A stretch of 54,783 bases of DNA, taken from Octopus bimaculoides (taxonomy: Eukaryota). The position numbers and the translations under genes are program-made. The stretch covers positions 49,321,472-49,376,254 of the forward strand of contig NC_068998.1 of assembly GCF_001194135.2 (NCBI RefSeq), in the 5' to 3' direction. A model generated the notes under the pieces. The model saw only the letters and a program-made list of their open reading frames with translations, was not told where the DNA came from and made no database searches. This document shows, in pieces, positions 1,034-54,501 of this stretch; the stretch's first letter is position 1, and every line of letters begins with the position of its first letter.

Positions 1034-4000
1034 GTGTTGCCGTACCCCAAGATTGCGGTAAACTAGCAAGAAGGTATTGCGATGCAAACTACGACGAGAG
1101 TCTTTCGCAGAATGGCTTCTGCATGTAAATATGATTCTAATGCTAATGTGATAAAACTAGCAAATATATATATATATATATATATATATATATATATATA
1201 TANNNNNNNNNNNNNNNNNNNNNNNNNNNNNNNNNNNNNNNNNNNNNNNNNNNNNNNNNNNNNNNNNNNNNNNNNNNNNNNNNNNNNNNNNNNNNNNNNN
1301 NNNNNNNNNNNNNNNNNNNNNNNNAATATTCTATAATTATAAATATAATTATAATCAGGGGTCAGCCAATTGCTTCGCCACGCACCGAATTAGAAATAGG
1401 ATGTAAATGCCTATTCTAGTACCATAAAAGATCTCTCAGACAGTAACACACTTCTTTCCGTAGGCAAAAAGAAAAAAATATAACGAATCCACACGACTCA
1501 GATTAGCTACATAGGCGTTTCGAGATTAAAGTAAAGTTATATTTAATTGCTTCTCATCTTCAGCATTTCCAAATATGAATTTGAGATTATTAGGATTATT
1601 GTAATTATTGAAATCACAATTTACTCCCTGATTGAAAACTACAGATTCTGGGGGAATGTTCGTAACACACACGTGGATATTGGGGATAAATATGTGTTCA
1701 CATTCGGCTGTATATTTCTGGGAGTGTAGTTGAATATCTGTTATGCGATGGCACTTGATCGCGTACATATTTAATCCTAACACTCTCAAATTTATATTTC
1801 GAAATCCTGCACTGAAGATGAGAAATAAGTATGTAAATATGACTTTACTTTAATCTCGAAACGCGTATGTAGCTAATCTGGATTCGTTATTTTTTTTCTT
1901 TTTACTTACGTAAAAACGTGTATTAATATCTGGGAGATCTTTTATGGTAGTTGAAAAGGCATTTAACCCCTATTTCTAATTAGGTGCGTGGCAAAGCAAT
2001 TGGCTGACTCCTGATTATAATTATGTTCATAATTAGAGAATATTTGTATAATTTTACCTAAAAGTTTATTTTAACGTACTGACTACTACTTAGTAAAATT
2101 ATTAATTATTAATTAATTCATTCATTAATTAATTCATTAATTTTACCCTATTATTGTTATTATTATTATTATTATTATTATTATTATTATTATTATTATT
2201 ATTATTATTATTATTATTATTATCTTATGTTAGACTTTTGCATTACATTTGTAGAAGTTGGCTCCAAGTCTCCCCCAGAGATCTCAAGAGACAAGTTAGA
2301 AGTTCCTGTTGGCGTTATACCTAGGGTGCCATATATTTGGTTTTGTACATAGTGTTGTTCTAGAGAATGTTTAAGAAACCATAAGAAAATTATGTGTTTG
2401 TTTTGAGATTTGAGATTACATAGACAGTATTTTACGTAGGATATGGGCAGTTCCTATGAGCACTATCTTTTGAATTTTTGCCATTTTGGGGGTTTCCTGG
2501 TATCTGAGTTAGGTAACAATCAGCCGTTTTTGCTATTATTATTATTATTATTAGTATTATTATTATCAAATGATGGCTGGACGAAAAACACAGACATACA
2601 AAAATGTATACATACACATATATATGTATGTATGTATGTATGTATGTATGTATGTATGTATGTATGTATGTATGTATGCATGTATGTATGTATGTATGTA
2701 TGTATGTATGCATGTATGATATGGGTGATAACTTCTGTGTCAAATCCACAATGTCTGCATCGGTTGTCTTGCGTCCCTATCCCTTTTGTGCATCAGGTAT
2801 TTGGCTGATATTTCTTGTTCCTGGATAGTAAACACATACCCTTGAAAGTGGGAAGTAGAAACCATTCTATTGGTCCATGATAGACTGCTTTGATGATCAA
2901 TGTTACCAACATCTCGGAGCTTTCTACTAACATATCGATGCGTAACCTTCAGCTCGTATAGGCTCATCATTTCATCTGATGTTACGTTGCGGTAGAGTCG
3001 TGTGACAATCTTTGGGCATGTATATATGGATGTATATGTATGTATGTATGTATGTATGTATGTATGTATGTATGTATGTATGTATATATGCATGCATGCA
3101 TGTTTGTATTTATATAAGTGTGTGTGTATATATACATATTCATCGGTTTACTTTTGTTTCTCTGTTTTCTAACACGAAACTCTCATATCTGTGTTTCAGT
3201 GTATATAAAATAGTATGCATGCAGATGTATACTTCTTCGAGTTCCTGTCTAATTTCTTACCGTATGACAACTATTATTTGCTTTGTCCTATCTTCGTTAT
3301 TTAGCGAGACATTTTTACACTGGTCAATGGTTATTTGAAAGAAGGTTTTTTTCTGCTTAAATTTTTCCAGCCAATACGATGACTTTCAACAATGTTTTAA
3401 GGACGTAAACACATATTGTTATGGCTACTTTGAGTTTGTCCAGAGGAAAGTGTGCAAGGTAATATATTTTCTTTTTTCACTAGTCTTTGTAAAATAGCCT
3501 ATCGCTAAAGAATATAGAACATGATATTTATTTTTCCAAAATCTTTGTGAGATTTGAGAATATATATTGAACCATTCTTTCAATAAATGCAGAGAGCGGG
3601 CGTGAGAATTGTTATGTCGCTCGAGAAATGCTTGAGTGCATTCTTTCCGTTTCTTTACGATCTGAGTTCAAATGGCGTTAAGTGCAGTTTTGCTTGTTAC
3701 CCTTTGCAAGCCAATGACGTAAGTACCAGCTGTTCACTGGAGTGGATGAGACAGACTTGCCTTTTCATTTAAAACTGATGGCGCCGTTCCGAAATTAGAA
3801 AGAATTATAATCTTAATTTCAAGGGCATATCTTTACTATCCAGGAACGAGAGATATCAACCAAATACCTGATGCACAAAAATGGGTAGGGATGGATGACA
3901 AAGGATGCAGACTTTGTTGAGCTGACACCGAAAATACCATCCATATCACACGCAGGAGAGCTTACTTAAGCTCTTGGTCCCATTAGATCCTGTCCAAAAT

Positions 4001-53200: not shown

Positions 53201-54501
53201 AGCGTATTCGACTGAATGCGTACTAGCAATTCTCCAGCCCTCTAATTCAAGTCACGTGGAGGTCACATATAGCCTTAGACTTTTGAGGTCACTAAAACAT
53301 ATCAGTCAAGTACTGGGGTCAATGAAATCGACTTTTACTCCTCTACTAAATATCCTTAGCTTTTACCAGAATTTCAAACAGCTTTAATTTTTACATTTAA
53401 CTCTGGAATGATTGGCGGAGTAAGCAAAAAATGTGTGTAATAGGTTCTTTTCATAAATTCTACTACACAAATTAGCAAGAACACAATGCAACCACGATGA
53501 AGAGAGCAGCGTGCACTACAATGCCCGCCCTCTCATTTGTTCTTATCCAAAGAGTATAGTATTGTATAGTAGTTTTCAATCTTAGTTTAATATTATTGAA
53601 TTCCTGTAAGAACCATGGGAATATACTGATCTTATAATATATTAATGTTTTGAACAGCCTTCGAATTTTTCTACCTAAACAGATTTTAACCGAATATTTA
53701 CACTTTATTATTTGAAGATTTATCTATTTCCACTGTTTAAATAAATCAATAATTTGTGTGTATTCACTATCGAAATATAATTTGTTTCTTTTCAGATGCG
53801 ATCACAAAGCTGTAGTAAGAGAAATCACGTATGTTATTACATTTTCACACTACTACATATATGTACTATTTTGTTACTGTGTTATCCTATCTGAAATTTC
53901 AGGGGAGGAGATTTGTCAATTATACCTGTGCTCAACTAATAGTTGTTTCATCGATTACGAAATTATGAAAGGCAAATTCGACTTCGGAGGAATTTGGACT
54001 CAGAGTGTTAAAACGGACGAAATGCTACCAGAATTTTGCCAACACGACAATTTATCGTAGTAACGTAACATCAATAACACCAGTGCTATTCTGTCTTTGT
54101 ACAGCGGTAATATTAATCTGACAGGACAATATTTTAATGTCTCTAAATACGAACGGTATTATGTATATATATATATATATATATATATATATATATATAT
54201 ATATGTGTGTGTGTGTGTGTGTGTGTGTGTGTGTGTGTGTGTGTGTGTGTGTGTGTGTGTGTATGTATACATGTATGCATATATATACGTACGTATATAT
54301 GAATGTGTGCATATATCTATATTTATATCAATATCTATATCTATCTATCTATCTATCTATCTAGCTATCTATCTATCTATCTATCTATCTGTATGTATTT
54401 GAGTATGTGTTGATAGATTTTTATTTCTTTTCTCTCTACAGATGACGTTTTTCTCAGCGTTCATTTCCGCAAGTGTTCTTAACACGCTGACGAATATTTG
54501 A
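50211..54501 (+). CDS. Unit 5: short (about 71-74 aa) member with signal peptide and 4-Cys head; anchored or secreted depending on donor choice
   Basis: 50211-50256 MQMTSICIFTYLLFDG (donor gtgagt); 50526-50616 VTATVDCNEVARKYCPGTFNKYVKHNNNCR; exon from 53796 CDHKAV.. (donor at 53814 gtaaga or 53828 gtatgt); optional 54105-54155; terminal exon from 54442 (phase 0 MTFFSAFISASVLNTLTNI*, 20 codons then AATAAA as in units 2 and 3). Confidence 0.7.
50930..51050. repeat. (GA)n microsatellite; representative of many further (TA)n, (CA)n, (TATC)n, (TC)n, (AAT)n and (TATG)n tracts
   Basis: Direct reading. Other tracts lie near 15450, 21525, 26090-26360, 42000, 43245, 43450-43850, 51350 and 54160-54390. 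Confidence 0.95.
51790..52200 (+). mobile_element. mariner transposase catalytic-domain remnant
   Basis: LELFWGYK..ENVNAEIHCPQLNE..VLGNGNRMIMQHGSARPCTA*..ITSLGW corresponds to the mariner W..G..tina..Yc.QL..HDNARPHTA..LGW region. Confidence 0.7.
52755..53380. mobile_element. Cluster of degenerate SINE family A copies
   Basis: gaggcagcgagc..gggcgaaatgcttagcggtatttcatccgc..tcgaggtcgattaaataagtac at 52755-52975, with further decayed copies to about 53380 and a minus copy at 53890-54050. Confidence 0.7.

Follow-up and report, generated by a model that had tools for sequence, protein, structure and literature searches.

The 54,783-nucleotide stretch of the Octopus bimaculoides genome analyzed here (NCBI RefSeq assembly GCF_001194135.2, contig NC_068998.1, positions 49,321,472 to 49,376,254 of the forward strand; hereafter the window) holds four complete genes arranged in tandem on the same strand, which we refer to as U1, U2, U3, and U5. 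We consider it likely that they are four paralogues of an octopus tandem cluster encoding small disulfide-rich cell-surface proteins, probably anchored through glycosylphosphatidylinositol (GPI). An original prediction, made from the sequence alone, had counted five hidden genes of an unrecognized family in the same stretch.

Each gene contains two cysteine-bearing exons (coordinates of all features are given in the table below). The first of these, the head exon, encodes [DN]C-x2-[LV]A-x2/3-C-x13/16-C in all four units, is flanked by AG before and GT after, and runs from phase 1 to phase 2; position, strand, phase, and cysteine pattern are those originally described. Three heads are preceded, again as described, by a short, hydrophobic, ATG-started signal exon ending in G/gt, and a 14-nt donor context, TTTCTGgtaagtgg, is common to the signal exons of U2 and U3. 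The U1 signal exon, MMLSLFIFLLVF, lies outside the readable window, either upstream or in the gap at 546-645. A partner exon of 88 nt (phase 2 to 0) follows 1.9-3.2 kb downstream of each head and adds three cysteines. The joined frames are open, which bears out the six-cysteine frames first proposed for U2 and U3. Every coding exon has canonical AG/GT flanks, and all joins are in frame. Exon mapping also recovered the linker and terminal exon types, which recur in the same order and on the same strand across the units, as had been noticed. Linker exons of 33, 42, 54, 63, and 69 nt are all symmetric (phase 0-0), number one to four per gene, and are rich in Ser, Pro, Lys, and Arg. The terminal exon codes solely for a hydrophobic tail of 16-19 residues, followed at once by a stop codon and AATAAA.

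A profile built from 19 family domains encoded outside the window was run against 2291 six-frame open reading frame (ORF) segments of the window. Three heads came out on top with E-values of 1e-7 to 1e-4, with the divergent U2 head in fourth place, and three partner exons likewise ranked on top (E 2e-8 to 3e-5). The full profile, which includes the window sequences, retrieved exactly four heads and four partners before noise set in at E ~0.1, and the readable sequence therefore holds no fifth cysteine domain. As judged by these scans, a chance origin of the window exons is excluded. A weak head-like match at 23503-23601 was dropped since it had no profile-scan support, and a candidate exon at 34483-34603 (RSCNCSKTN) was dropped as absent from the RefSeq model. 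At the nucleotide level the paralogues are too diverged to align except in the terminal-exon regions; tblastx of the window against itself and a loose tblastn returned mostly microsatellite noise, and an Rfam scan of the window gave no match.

The window exons agree exactly with four RefSeq proteins of O. bimaculoides, each named “uncharacterized protein”, so that none of the genes is hidden or unrecognized as a model. Every run of N within the span is intronic or intergenic in these gene models. The gap at 1203-1324 is crossed by spliced RNA (1124→3371), and that at 15541-15550 by the noisier joint 12788→15982. The remaining gaps are bridged by the RefSeq proteins alone, which were predicted on the 55.6-Mb scaffold and match the window exon for exon.

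The supposed fifth gene is a set of alternative 3′ exons of U3. This distal module (42559-45305) has three exons, whose counterparts in U2 are 20535 (type A linker), 20062 (type C linker), and 22775 (terminal exon), and it has no signal or cysteine exons of its own in the readable sequence. U3 can end either in its proximal terminal exon (37433-37492), which would give the canonical 108-aa form, or in the three distal exons 42559-42621, 43925-43966, and 45255-45305. Because the module lacks signal and cysteine exons and is spliced to U3, it appears to be what is left of the 3′ part of a paralogue since lost; at the nucleotide level, the terminal-exon regions at 45255, 37433, and 22775 are related. 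In RNA run X13, CAGCTTCCAAGAATGGCAG, the 3′ end of 42559-42621, precedes position 43924 (joint 42621→43925) in a contig covering 43924-44283 at depth 1908. Here the donor at 43966 is read through, and the frame continues to ...NRNEVRSALKITVTAEYFP and a stop without a hydrophobic tail. This tail-less form is commoner in X13 than the proximal terminal exon, whose contig (depth 337) starts at the acceptor of 37433 with five unplaced letters upstream. A contig of run X40 joins 43966→45255 at depth 8.

RNA evidence came from contigs of the O. bimaculoides run X13, with X40 added for U3, and only repeat-free stretches were used. Compared with this RNA, the splice joints proposed by the original prediction proved to be real. 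In X13, exon depth is ~10,000-25,000, intron depth 13-73, and depth between genes ~0. Seven joints are seen in this run: 1124→3371, 3458→4989, 5042→6370, 12788→15982 (noisy), 20597→21931, 21963→22775, and 42621→43925. For U1, the unplaced letters preceding 3371, TGGCTTCTGCAT, are identical to the end of exon 1034-1124, the loose ends on both sides of 3371-3458 match exons 1034-1124 and 4989-5042, and the joint 5042→6370 reaches a depth of 9576. Words of the U3 head exon are present in both X40 (fraction 1.00) and X13 (0.83). None of the exon words occurs in 15 other runs of the species labelled RNA or “RNA?”, and two raw RNA-seq runs, of which ~6% of the reads were sampled, gave no reads on the U2 head exon. 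U1, U2, and U3 are thus spliced, polyadenylated, and transcribed at a very high level in a sample-restricted manner.

U2 displays a sharp contrast between exons and introns. Its exons reach depths of 16,000-25,000 in X13 (values seem to level off at 25,000), whereas its introns show 29-73 and the sequence 3′ of the poly(A) site ~0-6; the low intron signal therefore represents pre-mRNA and not genomic DNA. Contigs on the head exon, at a depth of ~25,000, are confined to 12703-12788, with an intron depth of 73. On exon 15982-16069 the depth is 25,000 against 41-48 in the flanking introns, the high-depth contigs stop at 16069, and the unplaced letters that precede 15982 are similar to those with which the head exon ends. 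Further downstream, the loose letters ATCTTATAAAA before 21929 are the 3′ end of exon 20535-20597, and ATGCTGACCGATG behind 21963 is the start of exon 22775. The poly(A) site at 22858, 24 nt past the stop, is marked by an A22 tail in contigs of depth 16,183 and 2476. The U2 3′ untranslated region (UTR) is unusually short. A TAA stop followed directly by ATAAAT occurs in U2 (22832-22858), in the U3 proximal exon (37490-37500), and in U5 (54499-54510), and the short 3′ UTR is kept between the paralogues.

The products share a layout of short hydrophobic N-terminus, six-cysteine domain of 57-60 aa, polar linker, and hydrophobic end of 16-19 residues. In proteins of 105-174 aa, nothing but linker and hydrophobic tail follows the domain. 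The N-terminus, 12-15 residues on an exon of its own in U2, U3, U5, and relatives, is a putative signal peptide. Within the domain the cysteines are spaced C-x7/8-C-x13/16-C-x8-C-x7-C-x10/12-C, and all six are invariant in 23 aligned domains. Two AlphaFold2 models of the domain each contain three helices (pLDDT 72 and 74, pTM 0.60 and 0.58), and the six cysteines presumably form three disulfides that lock a three-helix bundle. The last 16 residues have a mean Kyte-Doolittle value of 1.2-2.5 and zero or one charge in U1, U2, both U3 forms, and U5; most family members examined likewise end in a hydrophobic 16-mer with a mean above 1 and zero or one charge. Ser, Asn, or Gly residues stand 8-12 positions upstream of the tail. 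A hydrophobic end, a polar spacer, and small upstream residues are the anatomy of a GPI-attachment signal. By these features of their sequence, the proteins should be secreted and are probably GPI-anchored, and the type B 33-nt micro-exon of U2 and U5 would carry the omega site. The long linkers of U2 and of the distal U3 isoform contain a repeated [EV]QKR/SP motif (the slash marks the putative cleavage point), which could serve as a convertase site for shedding the domain. Tail-less isoforms are found for U3 and for LOC128249787.

We propose that the precursor would enter the endoplasmic reticulum and that a GPI anchor would replace its hydrophobic tail, attached to one of the small residues encoded by the last linker exon (e.g., GSCNGS, or SNSGN in relatives), so that the helical domain would face outward from the membrane. 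A soluble protein may be released through tail-less isoforms or, in the long linkers, through cleavage at QKR/SP. The cluster itself would have been built by tandem gene duplication together with duplication and capture of linker and terminal exons.

Several points weigh against this explanation. The GPI assignment was made with a hydrophobicity heuristic; the tails of U1 and U5 are only moderately hydrophobic (Kyte-Doolittle ~1.2), and that of U1 contains a Lys. The AlphaFold2 models are of moderate confidence and were built from only 23 sequences. The joints seen in RNA are those of U1, U2, and the 3′ part of U3; U5 and the 5′ junctions of U3 are predicted from sequence and RefSeq models, and the junction into exon 37433 from sequence. 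The first exon of U2 (10400-10560 region) has no X13 contig although later exons exceed a depth of 16,000; the contig on intron 1 has its first letter at 10561, precisely where k-mers of the two forms, spliced and unspliced, would diverge, as expected if the donor at 10588 is used. Finally, the similarity to RGM_N discussed below is weak: the window proteins have no match to PF06535, matches in the PDB reach only E 0.35-0.89, and Foldseek gave nothing significant.

Three other explanations have to be set against a GPI-anchored surface family. The original prediction had thought of processed extracellular peptides, such as toxins, host-defence peptides, or recognition and signalling molecules. 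In that case the genes would encode precursors from which proprotein convertases cut the cysteine-rich domain, the linker peptides, or both, to be secreted as bioactive molecules (toxin, antimicrobial, pheromone, or hormone-like), with the tail as a pro-region or sorting signal. Dibasic sites in conserved linker context (VQKR/SP three times across U2 and the distal module, CKR/S in U2, SKR/N in U5), an extreme abundance of transcripts confined to one sample, in the manner of gland products, and the plentiful tail-less isoform in X13 would suit such precursors. U1, however, has no dibasic site; amidation signals and repeated peptide copies are lacking; and there is no match to toxin or antimicrobial peptide families, apart from a sub-threshold Big-defensin match (E 0.011) in one paralogue that covers residues 1-55 and starts at the signal peptide. 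The hydrophobic C-terminal exon is moreover the most regularly kept feature after the cysteine domain, which a mere pro-region would not explain and which points to a GPI-anchored surface protein instead. We therefore retain released peptides as a rival and consider them unlikely. The same exon could be read as a C-terminal transmembrane helix that holds the protein in the membrane with no GPI exchange, since its 16-19 hydrophobic residues lie at the very end. Yet hardly any or no cytoplasmic residue follows, the hydrophobic run is short, with no more than moderate hydrophobicity in U1 and U5, and the small residues upstream are placed as in GPI signals, all of which makes a transmembrane anchor very unlikely.

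The last of these explanations denies that there is a real gene family and takes the exons for chance ORF fragments, pseudogenes, or annotation artefacts in repeat-rich DNA. The window is indeed repeat-rich and full of gaps, and its exons are too short for an ORF track. Such an artefact, to which we give practically no chance, is refuted by three findings: the RNA is spliced and polyadenylated and reaches a very high depth, a profile free of window sequences gives E-values as low as 1e-8, and at least 16 loci have invariant cysteines and keep the same exon phases.

The family extends far beyond the window. An exhaustive HMMER scan of 1.84 billion representatives with a four-sequence query profile (E ≤ 1e-3) yielded 21 matches, and all but one are Octopus proteins with the same layout. 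The exception, P0008, a sea-bass mesothelin-like protein of 4675 aa matched over eight short stretches, is a spurious repeat match. RefSeq loci of O. bimaculoides account for 16 of the Octopus matches, and 15 of these loci share the 55.6-Mb scaffold; the others are an older entry in UniProt and three O. vulgaris predictions with two to four tandem domains, which are probably fused neighbours. No match in other molluscs was found with this profile, and because it was built from four sequences and applied at a strict threshold, “Octopus-only” holds as far as the search reaches. A word-indexed protein search returned just two proteins per query, even with a 23-sequence profile. The proposal of a lineage-specific, expanded family of secreted or surface cysteine-rich proteins has thus held up, with at least 16 O. 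bimaculoides loci, restriction to Octopus proteins, and a putative signal peptide. The gene models are already in RefSeq; the family itself is undescribed, and a literature search turned up no publication on these loci or on such a family.

A family with no name and no Pfam model, whose transcripts rank with the most abundant in one sample and are missing from most others, is a candidate marker and functional target for the octopus tissue or cell type that expresses it. When small disulfide-rich proteins, secreted or GPI-anchored, expand in a single lineage, they are often a sign of biology peculiar to it, for instance in recognition, modulation of signalling, or secretions. The genes also illustrate evolution at the level of exons, with symmetric linkers duplicated within a gene and a captured 3′ half that switches between anchored and soluble products. 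For the annotation, “five hidden genes” becomes four known models and one captured module.

Several further features were seen in and around the units. Within U2, two stretches are duplicated in tandem beside two assembly gaps (18063-18555 versus 19637-20217, and 19284-19622 versus 20504-20973; 77% and 90% identity), and this intragenic duplication accounts for a spare, intact copy of the type A linker. Single X13 contigs contain clusters of A>G differences on the + strand, with nine sites in 38 nt at 15263-15300 in a U2 intron (depth 36) and six sites in 25 nt at 23785-23809 (depth 3). Such clusters resemble the outcome of A-to-I hyper-editing, in the first case of the U2 pre-mRNA and in the second of RNA that reads through beyond the gene, and would hint at an ADAR-rich, possibly neural, source tissue for X13. 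In cephalopods, RNA editing is richest in nervous tissue. U1 has an intron in its 3′ UTR (6459-7283; joint 6458→7284); in X13 the spliced form reaches a depth of 2572 and the form that keeps the intron 522. An intron in this position can flag a transcript for nonsense-mediated decay. A block of ~370 nt with 76% identity lies 1.2-1.7 kb 3′ of the terminal exons of U1 and U2 (7620-7983 versus 24539-24906); it could be either a repeat common to both sites or what is left of the unit first duplicated in tandem. A repeat of ~385 nt (13031-13415) with a 95% identical inverted copy at 5607-5991 reaches contig or read depths of 10^4-10^5 in all RNA runs examined; this interspersed element has no relation to the genes and is transcribed at a very high level. 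Copies resembling short interspersed nuclear elements (SINEs) occur around 12801-12950, 25630-25800, and 37632-37781, and SINE-like repeats dominate the stretch 10370-15450 in the RNA mapping.

Table. Genes, exons, and assembly gaps of the window, in window positions.
Unit	Feature	Positions	Strand	Length	Details
U1	gene	1034-6426	+		RefSeq LOC128249838 (P0002), 108 aa
U1	head exon	1034-1124	+	91 nt	phase 1 to 2; (G)+29 residues
U1	second Cys exon	3371-3458	+	88 nt	phase 2 to 0; 30 residues
U1	linker exon	4989-5042	+	54 nt	phase 0 to 0; 18 residues
U1	terminal coding exon	6370-6426	+		18 residues; stop 6424-6426; exon continues to 6458
U2	gene	10552-22858	+		RefSeq LOC128249837 (P0004), 174 aa
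U2	signal exon	10552-10588	+		12 residues; ends G/gtaagtgg; RefSeq start is the upstream ATG at 10507
U2	head exon	12701-12788	+	88 nt	phase 1 to 2; (G)+28 residues
U2	second Cys exon	15982-16069	+	88 nt	phase 2 to 0; 30 residues
U2	linker, type A	17388-17456	+	69 nt	23 residues; from RefSeq protein mapping and AG/GT flanks
U2	spare linker copy, type A	19315-19377	+	63 nt	21 residues; AG/GT flanked; not in RefSeq model
U2	linker, type C	20062-20103	+	42 nt	14 residues; from RefSeq mapping and AG/GT flanks
U2	linker, type A	20535-20597	+	63 nt	21 residues; from RefSeq and X13
U2	micro-exon, type B	21931-21963	+	33 nt	11 residues; candidate GPI omega-site region
U2	terminal exon	22775-22858	+		19 residues; coding to 22834; stop 22832-22834; AATAAA directly after
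U3	gene	26639-37655 or to 45390	+		RefSeq LOC128249820 (P0003), isoform X2, 140 aa
U3	signal exon	26639-26675	+		MIVFAFIFFLIS; ends G/gtaagtgg
U3	head exon	30773-30872	+	100 nt	phase 1 to 2; (G)VATKEDCNALAQKICPHSFDVFSGKSWDQRFC
U3	second Cys exon	32846-32933	+	88 nt	phase 2 to 0; SKQKLFFSCFHGKNDRCMKYFSILSYLLCE
U3	linker exon	36237-36278	+	42 nt	NRCKNQGKVSDGNK
U3	proximal terminal exon	37433-37655	+		VMPETLSLAPFLVILIILI; stop 37490-37492
U3, distal module	linker, type A	42559-42621	+	63 nt	VGEQKRSPRIHTSNTASKNGR; used by isoform X2
U3, distal module	linker, type C	43925-43966	+	42 nt	PSDDPPSGSDNRNE
U3, distal module	terminal exon	45255-45390	+		MMSQTLYFATFLIILL; stop 45303-45305; AATAAA before 45390
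U5	gene	50211-54501	+		RefSeq LOC128249822 (P0001), 105 aa
U5	signal exon	50211-50256	+		MQMTSICIFTYLLFD; ends G/gtgagt
U5	head exon	50526-50616	+	91 nt	phase 1 to 2; (G)VTATVDCNEVARKYCPGTFNKYVKHNNNC
U5	second Cys exon	52462-52549	+	88 nt	phase 2 to 0; SLFSKFHKCFDGRDRYCSSYFQFHSIHKCA
U5	micro-exon, type B	53796-53828	+	33 nt	MRSQSCSKRNH
U5	terminal coding exon	54442-54501	+		MTFFSAFISASVLNTLTNI; stop, then ATAAAT
	runs of N	546-645, 1203-1324, 15541-15550, 18576-18851, 20218-20497, 24252-24452, 31026-31156, 33357-33516, 36446-36996, 46291-46300, 49403-49412

Among known families, the N-terminal domain of the repulsive guidance molecules (RGM_N; RGMA, RGMB, and RGMC; PDB 4UHY, 4UHZ, and 4UI2) is the only one that recurs in the Pfam, PDB, and hhalign comparisons. 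The four window proteins have no Pfam match (for RGM_N, PF06535, none at E ≤ 10). Their relative P0015 matches RGM_N at E 2.1e-9 with 37.9 bits summed over four repeats, above the cut-off of 24.2 bits, and P0006, P0007, P0019, and P0009 give sub-threshold matches (E 0.02, 0.11, 0.13, and 3). The matches always fall on the [FY]C-x8-C-x7-C stretch. Against the PDB (E ≤ 10), the N-domains of RGMA, RGMB, and RGMC were the only matches of the family profile; hhalign against 16 true RGMs aligned the same 28 columns (E 0.018, probability 2.5%), and phmmer of P0015 against the PDB found nothing. Prediction and comparison of the fold, which the original prediction had suggested as a check, gave three helices, and Foldseek searches with the two models returned generic helical bundles only (E > 2). 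The second model placed RGMB (4ui2_C) at rank 10 with E 7 and TM-scores of 0.31/0.27, and the first gave no RGM match. Because this weak similarity recurs among relatives, the earlier verdict that no known family can be assigned is only nearly true.

RGMs are GPI-anchored (PMC10084454). Their N-terminal domain folds into a compact alpha-helical bundle and binds BMP2 (PMC13234300); it reportedly is found in no other protein family (PMC10084454, PMC13234300). The octopus domain resembles it in its predicted helices and its richness in cysteine, with an identical central [FY]C-x8-C-x7-C and, here, a predicted GPI anchor. In contrast to RGMs, the octopus proteins, at ~105 aa, consist of the domain only and lack the vWD-like C-terminal domain with GDPH autocleavage; PF06534, which true RGMs carry, had no match in the family proteins scanned. 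The first helix also differs, with C-x2-C-x4-C in the RGM consensus and C-x7/8-C in the octopus family, and the octopus loops are shorter. The family may thus be called RGM_N-type in architecture, but membership in the RGMs is unproven, the similarity being weak and, for the window proteins, not statistically established. By analogy, one may speculate that the domain is a ligand-binding co-receptor or decoy, which is a guess. A bolder idea is that of a stand-alone, massively duplicated RGM_N derivative, GPI-displayed on octopus neural cells as a ligand-binding or recognition set (e.g., modulators of BMP/TGF-beta or neogenin). The weak RGM_N similarity and the sense-strand A-to-G hyper-editing of the U2 intron are hints in this direction, and we consider the idea quite unlikely. 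Such a neural set would parallel the octopus protocadherin expansion. If the link to RGM_N holds, the family would be the first stand-alone use of that ligand-binding module.

Other likenesses are matters of name or architecture. Sub-threshold matches to DUF5332 (PF17266; U2 at E 0.016 and P0006 at 0.049, over the same profile region ~52-119) and single ones to Big-defensin, Nodulin_late, and PV-1 were treated as noise. UniProt names the paralogue P0013 (A0A0L8GPX5) a “GDNF/GAS1 domain-containing protein”; this assignment was rejected, as PF02351 had no match at E ≤ 10 in 24 family proteins scanned, P0013 and the window four included. The GDNF/GAS1 domain of GFR-alpha and GAS1 is the cysteine-rich, all-helical domain of GPI-anchored co-receptors, with ~10 cysteines and five helices, whereas the octopus domain has six cysteines and three predicted helices. 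Ly6/uPAR proteins combine a signal peptide, a small disulfide-rich domain, and a GPI signal with clustered paralogues and soluble variants, and the octopus proteins are like them in architecture. Their fold is a three-finger beta structure with 8-10 cysteines and a C-terminal CCxxxxCN, unlike the octopus domain, which is predicted to be all-alpha and has six cysteines and no CC or CN motif. There is no homology, and Pfam UPAR_LY6 had no match in the family proteins scanned. The gene structure recalls the micro-exon genes (MEGs) of Schistosoma, whose secreted products are encoded by many very short symmetric exons between a signal and a terminal exon; skipping or duplication of these exons varies the product. 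MEGs have the greater part of their coding sequence in symmetric exons of ~6-36 nt, whereas the octopus domain is carried by asymmetric exons of 88-100 nt, and the two are not related in sequence; the likeness lies in the octopus linker exons, which at 33-69 nt and phase 0-0 are likewise duplicated or alternatively used.

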